A stretch of 64,000 nucleotides of DNA from Pseudomonas aeruginosa PAO1 (GCF_000006765.1 NC_002516.2); one strand, 5' to 3'; positions 8,535 through 14,339 are shown, numbered from the stretch's first letter. Notes: generated from the letters alone by a model not told the origin. Translations and numbers: made by a program.

Positions 8535-10584
8535 CCAGCAGCACAATACCCGCCAACACCAGATTCCAAAAACCGAATCCGCACCACTCAAGCCGCGACT
8601 ATTGCGGTTAGCAGCGGGGGAGGTTGTGGTTCTGCGGGTGGCAATAGAGGTGCCCACCAGATATGGGAGAGGCCATGGCTTAGGGAGGGAAGGGCTGTAT
8701 ACGGCCACCCGAACCCCACCTCCAGGAGAAAGCGGACGGTCAATTCTGTATATAAATCCCCCCTTTTCGCTATCGAGATGGGCGGCTCGCTGCTCGCCAG
8801 CCGCGCTACTGACCTGCTTTTCGCAGTCAGGCTGCGCTCACCTGACGCTGCGCCCCCAGGTCCAGGTGAGCGCAGCCCGACGGCTAACTCAAAGGCCCAA
8901 CTAAGCGGTGACATTCGTCCTTTACACTCACGCGGGCCGAACCTGGAGCATTAAAGATGGGAATGGCCCAGCGGCTCACATGCGAGGAGTCGATAAGGCG
9001 GCCTGGCCATACGCGTACCGGGGGCCACGTCATAGTCGCTCGATTTCTTCCGCCCTGAACCAGTTGTTGCGCAGCGCCGCCGCAATGAGCGCTTCGGGAT
9101 CCTTCGTGTAGGCCACCAGCGCCAAGCTTTTCTGGGCACGAGTGCAGGTCACATATAACAGGCGACGCGTGCGCACGGTGCCCTCTTCAGCCGTGTCAGC
9201 AGGAGTTTTACGACTAGCTCCTGTCGCTGGTGTCGCTTCGAATAATTTGTCGTAAGAAAACAGAAAGCCGCGTGCATCGCTATCGTCGAGGATCACCAGG
9301 ACACGTTCAAACTCCAGGCCTTTCACACCCTGATGTGTACCGAGGGGCCCTTTATCACTGACGTATTCCGCGAATGGGATCGACTGCCTGTACGGTGTTT
9401 CCAGGAATGCTCGCCAGGCCTCCAAGCTCGCAGGAGACCTCTCTTCCGGCGCGTCTTCTTCGCCCGGTGCGCTCTCATCGCCGGCCAGCTCGACATCGTT
9501 TTCTTCAGCTCCATTCGCAACAAATGGGCGTAGCGCATCAGGAATCTCGAATAAACGATGTTTTGCGACGCATTCCAACACGGCGAGGAAAGTGGTTTCC
9601 TGGCCGTCAGTATCCAGGGTAAGCAGTGCTTCTACAGCGGCGCGAATCGGTAATAACGGATCATCCGTGTGCGCGAGCCGAGCGATAGCTGCACGCTGGA
9701 GAAGCGGCGAGGTCGCGCGCAGCTGCGCCATCACTGCGAAGTCATCCTTCATACGCGCGGCGGCAATCAGCGGGGCGACTCTATCGGTGAATAATCTGAG
9801 CCCGGCTAAGTCCCCTGTGCGCAGACCTGTCGATAGGCGTGAATCCTGGTTGAGCGCCTGGAACATCTCCAAGAAGCCACGGCGTGATGCCGCCATGTGA
9901 TGTTCGAGCGTCAGCGCTTTGACCGCAGCCTCCTCACGCCACTGGAGATCGTTACACAAGTCGGCCATTCGATCGCGCGCGCGCCGCTCAAGTGCAGGCT
10001 TATCAAGGACATCGCTGGGAGACACAAAGAGACGGACAATACCGATTTCGCTGTCTTCGCGGGCTACCTGGTATTGGCCATCAACAGGCTCTCTTAGCAC
10101 ATTGCCGAGGGCAATCACGCGTTGGGGGGAACGATGGTTAAGGCGCTTAGCCGGACGCGCCCAGTCTGCGGGAACCAGACGCTCCAGCTCGGGATGACCA
10201 TCCAAGAAAATGCGTTGCATGGTATCGCCGAATAGGCCAATCGCGAACTTGCCCTTGTGTGCGGCAGCTAGGGCAAAGAAGGCTTCTATCAGCCCTCTAT
10301 TCGTATCCTGACTCTCGTCGATAAGCAAGAAGGGAAATCTGTTAACCAAGATCGCTTGCATCGATGGTTTGGTTTCAATGAACGCAGCGGTGATTTTCAG
10401 CACCTCTGCGTGGGATAGCGAGTCCTGACCAAAATTATCGCCGTTGGGGCTGTAGGTAAACCGCCGAGGAACACTGAGCCACTCAATCCGTTGCATCGTG
10501 GAAGCGATGGCCCTCTCGCTGTAGTGGTCTACTGATCCCGGACACCGATTTAGGCGAAAATCCTCGCCGTGAGAGAGGTGTCTG

Positions 10585-10893
10585 ATGAGCAAGCAACGAC
10601 GTACGTTTTCCGCCGAGTTCAAACGAGAGGCCGCGGCCCTGGTGTTGGACCAAGGCTACAGCTATATCGACGCCTGCCGTTCGCTGGGGGGGGTGGATTC
10701 GGCCTTGCGCCGTTGGGTGAAGCAGCTCGAGGCGGAGCGCCAGGGTGTGACCCCGAAGAGCAAGGCGTTGACGCCTGAGCAGCAAAAGATCCAGGAGCTG
10801 GAAGCCCGGATCAACCGGTTGGAGCGGGAGAAAGCGATATTAAAAAAGGCTACCGCTCTCTTGATGTCGGACGAACTCGATCGTACGCGCTGA
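10585..10893 (+). CDS. IS3-family transposase OrfA (HTH)
   Basis: [19 protein letters not shown] start, leucine-zipper-like end [19 protein letters not shown]. Confidence 0.93.
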
Positions 10894-11747: not shown

Positions 11748-12224
11748 CCACTACACGCGGTCTTGCGCGGCCTTGGTGCCAGAGCGCCCCTTCGCTTGCT
11801 TCTCGCGTAGGTCGGCAAGCTCAACCGGAAGTCTGTTGAGGAGCCACGCCTGGATATCACGATGGTAGGCCTCGATATGGCGCCAGCAGAAGCTGTGGAT
11901 CGTCGATATAGGAAACAGCGGATCCTCTCCGACACGTTCGGCGATTTCGTCGGCCGCGACGTTCGTATATGTAATGACCGCGATCTTCTTACCAGTCCGC
12001 CTAAAGGTCGCGCCATGATCTTCGCGAAAGGTGTCGAGCGCCCTTTTCAGAGAGCGCGTCTTACCGGATCCTGCCCCGGCGTAGAGAAAAAAGCTTTGCG
12101 GCGCGGCGGGATTCAGACAGGCCCGTATCTGTACGTCGGCGCTCTCATCGAAGTCTGGCGCGGCCGTTTCAATGATCATGCTAATCCTCTGCTCCCTGGA
12201 TTTCGCTCTGGGCGATGTCCTTAC

Positions 12225-14339
12225 CTACCGCCCCTCATCTCCGGACAGATCCTGAGCGACAATGCCGCGAACCTTGGCCGAGGTGATCGAACCTTCGATC
12301 TTTCCAGCGACTGCCAAATTCTCCAGGATCAAGGCGTCCTCAAAGGTTCGCGGAATGATGAGGTCGCTGTCTTCGGAAGCACCCTTCACGTTGACTGGCT
12401 TTTGATAGGCGACATACAGCTCATAGTCGCCGCCAGCCGTTGAAATGTGTCCATCGGGCGGTAGCGCGACGAGTTCATCAATAAGCTTTTTCCCGGGGTG
12501 CCAATCTTTGAGAACTGAGTTTGCGGTTTGCTGAGCTTTGCCCTGCTCGGGGCGAGCCGACTTCCAACGAGTTGTTTCTCGCATATTTTTATCGATAATC
12601 TTAACCGCCGTTGTGGCATCCAGATCGCCAATGATCAGCGTCGCGATGCCGAGCGCGTCGACTAAATTGCGGAAGCTGTGCACGTGACTTCCGCCGAGTT
12701 CGAGCAACGTAACGTAGCGCCGCGACAGCTCTGGAAAATGATGGCGGATGAAGTGAGGCACCAGGATGCGCTCCGCCTGTCCCTCGACGAAGATGACGCC
12801 GTCTGCGAAGAAGAGATCGCAGTGGGTCGCCTTGAGGTAGCGTTTCACGAAGCGCTTTGTCTCGTCCCCATCACCGAAGATGTAGGACAGATTGGCCACC
12901 GTAGTGGTCGGCGTCTCCCCCATGCTGGCCGCCGGCCGGCGCCGAAAATAGCGTAAATTGGCGAAGTCAGCTTCGTGCGCGACGTGACTCGAGTGCGTAC
13001 TGACGATCAGTTGAGTGCAATAGTTTTCCGCGACACCCAGATCGGCGTGCTTTCGGAGTAGTGTATAGGCCTTGTTAATGAAGACCTGCTGGACCTGTGC
13101 ATGAAGATGGGCTTCGGGTTCCTCTACTAGCACGAGGTGCAGTGGCTGTATCTCGTGTGACACGTCGGCCCCCTCGAGAATGCCGGCTTTCTCTACGCGC
13201 ATCCACTCGTCGCGGAAGCCCATCAACATGAACACCATGGCAATCAGGTTCTGATACCCGAGCCCCGAATAGTCCTCTGGTAGTTGGAGGGTGTTGCTGC
13301 CGTCCCCTGAAGGGTCTGCAACCTGGTACTGCACGGACGATCCATGCTTGAGCCCATCCGTTCCCCGAAGAAGGGTCGAGATCTTGAGCTTGGGATTACT
13401 CATGCCTGGATAACCCAGATCCTCTAGCTCTTGAAAGGCAGCGGAAAAGCCTTCCTCAAGTCGCGCGTCAAAACTGCGCTCAGCCGCTTGAATTGCTCCG
13501 AGCGCTTCATAGTCCTTGTCCGATGGCGTCTTCGTCGGGTCGAGATGGCGATCATAATAGGAGCGTAACTGGTCTGAGAGGCGACGTTTGAACCGACGAT
13601 TGTTCGCCTCCCCCTTGTCTTCACCGCCGTCACTGCTGCTAGCGTCGGCGAAGTCGCGCTGCGCGGCGATTTCGTCAATCTTGATGAGTTTTTTGAATGG
13701 TGGATGCTCGAACGCAAGTGCGCTGGCGGGGAGCCTTTGCGGCGTCGCGAGGCCGCTTCTTCCCGGCGGAACAACAGCAGCCGGGTCAAGGGGATAGGCT
13801 AGGAGTTCAAGATGTGCTCGCAGCCGACGCTCCAGAAAGTCTGTAAGGTTGCGTGGCCAGACTGCAATCTTGATCGACTCACCGTTCGGCCCAACGATAG
13901 CCGCGTCCCGCGCCGCAGTTCGTTGCGCGATATATTCGCTCTTGAGTTTGTCGAGATTTTTTATTCGAAACGCTAGTCGAACCCCCAGCAGCCCGCCGGA
14001 CCAATCTAACGTTGGTAGGATATCGACGACGTGCTGGATCTCGCGGAGCGGAACGTCAAGCCAGACATCCAGCGAGGGAAGCAGCGAATCCAGATCGACG
14101 GTGGGCTCCGCACCGGCTTCCCACTCGCTCCCCAGTAGATCAATCTTGGTCCAATTTGCAATTGTGACGTCGCGAAGATTCAAGCGCGTAGGTGATAGTA
14201 GGAAGATGCGCAGCGCCAGCATTGCAGAGGTCTTTCCGCTGTTGTTGGCACCGACCAGAATCGTCGTGTTTTTATCTAAATCGAGATGGGTAGACTTCAG
14301 CTTTCGGAAATTGGAAATCTCCACAAACTTGATTCGCAT
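12225..14339 (-). CDS. gajA: OLD-family ATP-dependent TOPRIM nuclease, Gabija GajA (possibly C-terminally truncated)
   Basis: Walker A GANNSGKT, Walker B/D-loop VEEPEAHLH, H-loop STHSSH, TOPRIM VIFVEGQAE and GDLD, TFEDAL; GGAGGT RBS; directly upstream of the UvrD-like gene. Confidence 0.85.
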   Translation of the reverse strand: MRIKFVEISNFRKLKSTHLDLDKNTTILVGANNSGKTSAMLALRIFLLSPTRLNLRDVTIANWTKIDLLGSEWEAGAEPTVDLDSLLPSLDVWLDVPLREIQHVVDILPTLDWSGGLLGVRLAFRIKNLDKLKSEYIAQRTAARDAAIVGPNGESIKIAVWPRNLTDFLERRLRAHLELLAYPLDPAAVVPPGRSGLATPQRLPASALAFEHPPFKKLIKIDEIAAQRDFADASSSDGGEDKGEANNRRFKRRLSDQLRSYYDRHLDPTKTPSDKDYEALGAIQAAERSFDARLEEGFSAAFQELEDLGYPGMSNPKLKISTLLRGTDGLKHGSSVQYQVADPSGDGSNTLQLPEDYSGLGYQNLIAMVFMLMGFRDEWMRVEKAGILEGADVSHEIQPLHLVLVEEPEAHLHAQVQQVFINKAYTLLRKHADLGVAENYCTQLIVSTHSSHVAHEADFANLRYFRRRPAASMGETPTTTVANLSYIFGDGDETKRFVKRYLKATHCDLFFADGVIFVEGQAERILVPHFIRHHFPELSRRYVTLLELGGSHVHSFRNLVDALGIATLIIGDLDATTAVKIIDKNMRETTRWKSARPEQGKAQQTANSVLKDWHPGKKLIDELVALPPDGHISTAGGDYELYVAYQKPVNVKGASEDSDLIIPRTFEDALILENLAVAGKIEGSITSAKVRGIVAQDLSGDEGR

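Follow-up and report, generated by a model that had tools for sequence, protein, structure and literature searches.

Gabija, a two-gene defence system in which a nuclease with ABC-ATPase and TOPRIM domains (GajA) is encoded ahead of an SF1A helicase (GajB), has been described in Bacillus cereus VD045 and Pseudomonas aeruginosa PA14. Defence requires both proteins in PA14 (10.1101/2025.08.30.673261), and likewise in B. cereus. P. aeruginosa PAO1, the standard phage-sensitive host for work on Pseudomonas phages and defence, has been said in a preprint to lack 'a functional Gabija system' (10.1101/2025.08.30.673261), and its PA1939 product has been called a putative OLD nuclease of 'obscure' function (Kawalek et al., PMC6945700). 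Our literature search on PA1935-PA1938 returned nothing useful. We analysed a 64,000-nucleotide stretch of the PAO1 genome (NC_002516.2; hereafter the window) that contains PA1939 and the helicase gene beside it. Gene order and orientation are those of the VD045 and PA14 systems, but unlike in working Gabija both genes are broken, gajA by a 133-bp deletion and gajB by the insertion sequence (IS) IS222. We conclude, with a probability of roughly 0.88, that two independent mutations inactivated the operon, and that it is a decayed system produced by ordinary pseudogenisation and not a reversible switch. That PAO1 Gabija is non-functional was already known; the locus has two hits, not one. The only detail that is possibly new is the gajA deletion, with the probable loss of a catalytic lysine.

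The original prediction had called this pair Gabija, and profile and structure searches bear it out. PA1939 contains the Pfam domains AAA_15 (E = 1.7e-45) and OLD-like_TOPRIM (E = 1.7e-17), carries the Walker motifs and the TOPRIM residues E519 and D572/D574, and matches the PADLOC GajA profile PDLC00093 with E = 1.9e-255, yet only over profile positions 1-663 of 736. Foldseek searches with a model of GajA from an intact allele returned the B. cereus GajA structures first (E = 2.7e-15), followed by Thermus OLD and the OLD protein of retron Eco8. A UvrD/PcrA/Rep-like SF1 helicase is encoded directly downstream on the same strand; in intact alleles the gajB start lies 1-11 nt from the gajA stop. 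The other OLD/helicase systems that could have claimed the pair (PARIS AriA, the retron Eco8 effector and Septu PtuA) were rejected, as they gave part-matches of GajA with E = 1e-51 or weaker against 1e-255.

The PAO1-type proteins form a longer subfamily (763-767 and 636 residues, compared with 578 and 494 in B. cereus), and PAO1-type GajA is distant from B. cereus GajA in sequence (E about 1e-7 to 1e-10). For the helicase we searched the two pieces separately and used naturally intact alleles where a full-length sequence was needed. A structure-sequence search with the GajB family profile ranked Rep, PcrA and UvrD above B. cereus GajB, so the helicase is a generic SF1A enzyme and its assignment as GajB comes from the PADLOC profile and from the class 2 OLD gene that precedes the helicase gene. 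A sequence search of the C-terminal piece against the PDB gave no match at E <= 0.001.

The nuclease gene, which the original prediction treated as intact, lacks 133 bp near its 3' end. We mapped this overlooked deletion by DNA alignment to loci L001, L002-L007 and L014/L015; the missing segment can be read in L002 at 9814-9946, and 2-4 nt of microhomology (GAG/GAAG) are present at its ends. A loss of 133 bp, a number not divisible by three, changes the reading frame, and a stop follows two codons later, which costs GajA approximately 65 C-terminal residues (703-767 of the 767-residue form). BLASTP alignments are collinear between PAO1 GajA and its relatives up to residue 702, with nothing beyond, and the PAO1 protein is identical to that of the intact 767-residue L002 allele at 700 of 702 positions. 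Among the 120 matches listed, nearly all GajA relatives have 747-793 residues, compared with 704 in PAO1, and the shorter entries look partial. The tail is kept in all 46 homologues that were aligned (57-93% identical), with L703, K716, D722, C723, P735, Y737, L742 and W744 invariant and 13 further positions conserved in at least 90%. We rejected the idea that the 767-residue form is a derived extension, since every one of these relatives keeps the tail and it is the PAO1 frame that breaks.

An AlphaFold model of an intact GajA allele predicts tail helices at residues 700-713, 716-724 and 736-757 (predicted local distance difference test scores of 82-91). A close known counterpart is the class 2 OLD nuclease of Burkholderia pseudomallei (BpOLD; 6NK8), which shares the TOPRIM E/DxD residues and the T-x-E metal-B ligands with GajA; the intact GajA form also shares its conserved lysine and terminal amphipathic helix, whereas the PAO1 protein has neither the lysine helix nor the terminal helix. 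In the alignment of the GajA family profile, residues 704-753 fall opposite residues 178-225 of chain 6nk8_A. As the 6NK8 construct comprises residues 374-594 plus an initial Met, chain residue K190 is K562, which places K562 opposite K716. The spacing agrees closely, with 51 residues from T665 to K716 and 56 from T506 to K562 in BpOLD. K562 of BpOLD points into the two-metal site, and the K562A and K562E substitutions impair processive cleavage; the last BpOLD helix packs along the TOPRIM sheet, and BpOLD whose helical domain is truncated can neither nick nor processively cleave DNA (Schiltz et al., PMC6755086).

By this comparison, truncation after residue 702 removes most of the post-TOPRIM helical domain of PAO1 GajA: the K716 helix is gone, and so is the terminal helix, which is predicted to lie against the TOPRIM sheet. 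Without the conserved lysine and the terminal helices, a class 2 OLD nuclease would be expected to lose processive cleavage, and it is likely that the truncated GajA is catalytically crippled. The complete GajA core, with the helical-domain lysine and terminal helix, is in any case not encoded at this locus.

The second lesion lies in gajB. The original prediction described an OLD/TOPRIM gene followed by a UvrD-like gene split by a 1236-bp IS3-family element with a CGC target duplication, and each of these features is present (Table 1). The element is inserted after gajB codon 141. Read-through from the 5' fragment into the element adds a Val and then a stop, giving a 142-codon open reading frame (ORF) at 11751-12179 on the minus strand. 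A 530-codon minus-strand ORF at 9030-10622 is spurious, its in-frame TTG (10622) lying within the left end of IS222. The translations place AGAGSGKT (motif I) and TYTN/TIHSF (Ia/Ib) in the N-terminal piece and LIDESQD (II), GDTMQRI (III), NHRS (IV), THQGVKGLEF (V) and YVTCTRA (VI) in the C-terminal piece, so that motifs I-Ib are parted from II-VI and no single polypeptide carries motifs I-VI. The two pieces occupy adjoining positions of one PADLOC GajB profile, the pattern of a single gene cut near residue 140.

Joining the flanks by script with one CGC copy yields a frame of 636 codons plus a stop (1911 nt), with zero internal stops and with all the SF1A motifs that occur in the two pieces, which reproduces the reconstruction on which the original prediction was built. 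The 5' fragment is identical to the intact GajB protein P0258 at 140 of 140 residues and the 3' fragment at 493 of 495; one residue differs from another intact GajB, P0265. The insertion separates the Walker A part of the protein from motifs II-VI, and with motifs I and II on different pieces the helicase would probably be unable to hydrolyse ATP.

The inserted element is one more copy of the known element IS222. It matches 11 plasmid copies over the full 1236 bp at 99.4-99.6% identity, most of which bear the annotation 'IS3-like element IS222 family transposase', and it agrees with the named IS222 of P. aeruginosa in size, ORFs, A6G site, ends and 3-bp duplication, with no notable difference. 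The repeat search found terminal inverted repeats of 25 nt (22/25 matching) with TG...CA ends. The two ORFs, orfA with a helix-turn-helix domain and orfB with a DDE domain, match NCBIfam transpos_IS3 and are joined by the frameshift heptamer A-AAA-AAG; in locus L008 they are called as one 387-residue fusion. With orfA, orfB and the heptamer all present, the transposase looks intact. A pattern search found no other occurrence of the IS222 end pattern in the window and 0 chance matches in shuffled sequences. Just within the right end, at 11747-11722 on the gajB-sense strand, lies a terminator-like hairpin with a T run (a consensus match only), which could halt transcription arriving from gajA.

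We infer from the two lesions that neither protein works, and that the locus therefore gives no phage defence and decays neutrally. Several points weigh against so complete a loss. The metal ligands of GajA (E519, D572/D574 and T665/E667, the last two being the metal-B T-x-E pair just upstream of the deletion) and its Walker A (GANNSGKT) and Walker B (LVLVEEPE) motifs are all intact in PAO1; the equivalence of K716 and K562 depends on motif spacing and on a profile alignment that is collinear but weak (domain i-Evalue 280); we found no published defence test of this 767/636-residue subfamily; and plasmid transformation was 4-fold lower with the PAO1 allele of PA1939 than with the W340* nonsense allele (Kawalek et al., PMC6945700), which could mean residual activity.

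One alternative is that truncated PA1939, alone or with the GajB fragments, still hydrolyses ATP and nicks DNA, and that it forms a weak barrier against DNA that enters the cell. Such a residual or new function would fit the retention of all ATPase motifs and TOPRIM metal ligands, the transformation effect, and the finding that BpOLD K562 mutants still nick DNA (PMC6755086); the single substitution in gajA codons 1-702 would fit as well, but so few changes are equally explained by a recent lesion. The BpOLD data also cut the other way, in that truncation of the helical domain abolished nicking too (PMC6755086), and the lost terminal helix is the counterpart of the helix lying on the TOPRIM sheet of BpOLD, so that the truncated protein may misfold. 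The 4-fold effect is small, its authors called the function obscure, and the PAO1 derivative PAO1161 tolerates a nonsense mutation in PA1939. We regard a retained function as improbable and keep to the reading of a decayed operon.

Intact alleles at the same chromosomal site show what the operon looked like without the lesions. In L014 (GCA_050653495.1) and L015 (SRR31927972), between the same catalase-like and DUF4354 genes, gajA encodes 763 residues and gajB 636 (P0265), with no IS, no 133-bp deletion and a natural empty site consisting of a single CGC triplet. This is the comparison with IS-free alleles that the original prediction had proposed. PAO1 differs from L014 by one substitution in gajA codons 1-702, none in the 5' piece of gajB and two in the 3' piece (two in 1908 nt of gajB). 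With three substitutions in roughly 4 kb of coding DNA separating PAO1 from an intact same-site allele, both lesions are young in evolutionary terms, and as far as the compared sequences go they are specific to the PAO1 lineage; the earlier view of a recent insertion into an otherwise undamaged gajB fits these counts.

Further intact copies are found on elements resembling integrative and conjugative elements (ICEs). The gajAB modules of L002-L007 are 99.6-99.8% identical to the PAO1 block and have neither the IS nor the 133-bp deletion; P0258 adjoins a 767-residue GajA on such elements, and full-length P. aeruginosa GajB proteins fall in the same 90% cluster as the PAO1 pieces. In L014, gajA (7708-9999) encodes 763 residues and its TAG stands one base before the gajB ATG, whereas in L002 (7708-10011) it encodes 767 and runs 11 nt into gajB; one base in the stop region explains the difference.

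Both lesions were present in all six PAO1-lineage loci compared. The exact 704-residue GajA and the 142-residue GajB stub each occur on at least 1000 contigs; PAO1-type loci lie at about 2.11-2.13 Mb of the chromosome, and all of those read share the same arrangement. Window positions 2225-24339 are 100% identical to PAO1 CP047067. An assembly artefact was rejected, as the whole block is the same in three of four independent complete assemblies of the PAO1 lineage and the fourth differs inside the IS only. That fourth case, the PAO1 subline L009 (CP053117), has an IS copy that differs at 11 positions and by a 10-bp gap near the right end; the differences span the equivalent of window positions 10604-11697 and the flanks are identical, and either gene conversion by a different IS222-like copy or faulty assembly could account for this. 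PAO1161 (L013, CP032126), a mutagenised, restriction-deficient PAO1 derivative, carries an extra gajA nonsense mutation, W379* in the 704-codon numbering (W340* as published), at about window position 13203.

Two lesions in a block with only three substitutions otherwise amount to more damage than drift alone would suggest, and the second might have been selected because one broken partner made the other harmful, for example through GajA left unregulated by the loss of GajB. Gabija can attack self DNA (10.1101/2025.08.30.673261), and the mutagenised subline PAO1161 gained its further gajA mutation, both of which would suit such a linked two-step loss. Yet GajA alone and GajB alone have been expressed in PAO1 with no toxicity reported (10.1101/2025.08.30.673261), the fetched loci include none that bears a single lesion, and two hits in an already useless gene pair are also expected by chance. 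A causal link between the lesions appears unlikely, and independent mutations remain our preferred account.

The original prediction went further and proposed that IS222 serves as a reversible off-switch of a costly defence, with precise excision at the 3-bp repeats restoring gajB, and with it defence, under phage pressure. One part of this stands: the joined gajB frame reopens to 636 codons, gajB is otherwise clean and the transposase of IS222 is apparently intact. There is also precedent, as lacZ of E. coli O121 is restored when an IS3-family element excises with the help of IEE (PMC9397093), and a cost is plausible, as Gabija kills recB mutants when its expression is strong (10.1101/2025.08.30.673261). 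That excision would restore function does not follow, since gajA is truncated whatever gajB does, and the off-switch reading fails on this anatomy. The closest parallels, IEE-assisted excision of IS629 or IS1203v from stx2, bla or lacZ in E. coli O157/O121, likewise involve an IS3-family element in a gene whose frame can be restored at short repeats, but for PAO1 neither a revertant nor an IEE gene, for which no directed search was made, has been shown, and its locus bears a second, irreversible lesion in the partner gene.

The biology of the element also argues against a switch. IS3-family transposition proceeds by copy-out-paste-in, which regenerates the donor copy; precise excision is known to be efficient only where transposase levels are high and IEE protein is present, and was about 1e5-fold rarer in a host lacking IEE (10.1101/2023.06.07.543989). 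IS222 would seldom be lost precisely, and such a loss would leave the system broken. The disrupted allele is found in every PAO1-lineage locus read, unchanged in the six compared save for the IS-internal variation in one subline; no IS-free revertant in the PAO1 lineage was found among the 40 of 67 cluster members read, and each of the three near-identical 636-residue GajB proteins compared differs from the PAO1 pieces. A plausible cost of Gabija speaks for selection favouring its loss but gives no reason to expect reversibility. The idea of an off-switch relieving a costly defence is speculation that we consider very improbable; the plain reading is loss by mutation.

Table 1. Coordinates of the broken Gabija operon, its IS222 insertion and the adjoining module sequence, counted from the first letter of the window
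Feature	Position	Strand	Remarks
gajA upstream region moving with the module	14340..14527	-	99.6% block common to L002-L007; homology ends at 14527
gajA (PA1939), truncated class 2 OLD nuclease, 704 codons	12225..14339	-	residues 1-702 authentic, then Gly-Arg-stop out of frame
Junction of the 133-bp deletion in gajA	12234..12235		removes codons 703 to ~747; frame of the remainder shifted
Out-of-frame remnant of the gajA 3' end, 53 nt	12181..12233	-	former codons ~748-763 and stop; holds the gajB ribosome-binding region; from the L014 alignment
gajB 5' fragment, residues 1-141	11756..12179	-	motifs I, Ia, Ib; PADLOC GajB PDLC00111 E = 3.5e-54, positions 5-139
Target-site duplication copy	11756..11758		CGC on + strand
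IS222 (IS3 family)	10520..11755	+	1236 bp; transposase antisense to gajB
IS222 left terminal inverted repeat (IRL)	10520-10544		repeat search
IS222 right terminal inverted repeat (IRR)	11731-11755		repeat search
IS222 orfA, 102 codons	10585-10893	+	HTH_Tnp_1
IS222 orfB, 281-codon ORF	ends 11747	+	rve/DDE
Frameshift heptamer A-AAA-AAG (A6G)	10842-10848		orfA/orfB -1 frameshift site
Target-site duplication copy	10517..10519		CGC on + strand
gajB 3' fragment, residues 141-636 and stop	9030..10519	-	motifs II-VI; PADLOC GajB PDLC00111 E = 3.2e-168, positions 137-623/625
gajB downstream sequence moving with the module	8729..9029	-

The operon is part of a larger module. The same 4.6-kb unit, with sharp homology ends (8729 and 14527), is found both at the chromosomal site and on ICEs, and the Gabija block has a G+C content of about 56%, compared with 67-70% in its flanks (window 8500-14500). 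There is no tRNA gene in the 64-kb window, and no integrase or flanking repeat was seen at the block borders. A plasmid origin of the module was considered and rejected, as there was no plasmid match for the gajA block. On the ICE-like element of L002 (1-21911; also L003-L007), which carries TraG_N and ParDE, gajAB sits in a packed defence island with HxsD and two radical-SAM genes, a second, convergent pair of OLD (687 residues) and UvrD (660 residues) genes, and Hachiman (HamA and an 868-residue helicase); IS3-family elements lie at the borders of the island. At the chromosomal site, G+C-rich palindromic sequences resembling repetitive extragenic palindromes occur at 8280-8330 and 8440-8560, between the DUF4354 gene and the Gabija block, and the catalase-like gene has an indel between PAO1 and L014.

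For annotation, these results mean that the PAO1 Gabija remnant should be scored as a two-hit pseudo-system; tools keyed on a strong GajA match could misreport PAO1 as Gabija-positive. Experiments aimed at a native-locus Gabija in PAO1 would need to deal with both genes and not with the IS alone, and the intact same-site copies in L014/L015 provide a clean comparison set. Beyond these uses in annotation and at the bench, the locus is a case of routine defence-gene decay through an IS and a small deletion. If, against our expectation, the two lesions are causally linked, or truncated PA1939 keeps nicking or ATPase activity as a weak barrier to incoming DNA, or both, which we hold to be unlikely, PAO1 would be a natural model for the stepwise dismantling of two-component nuclease-helicase defences.

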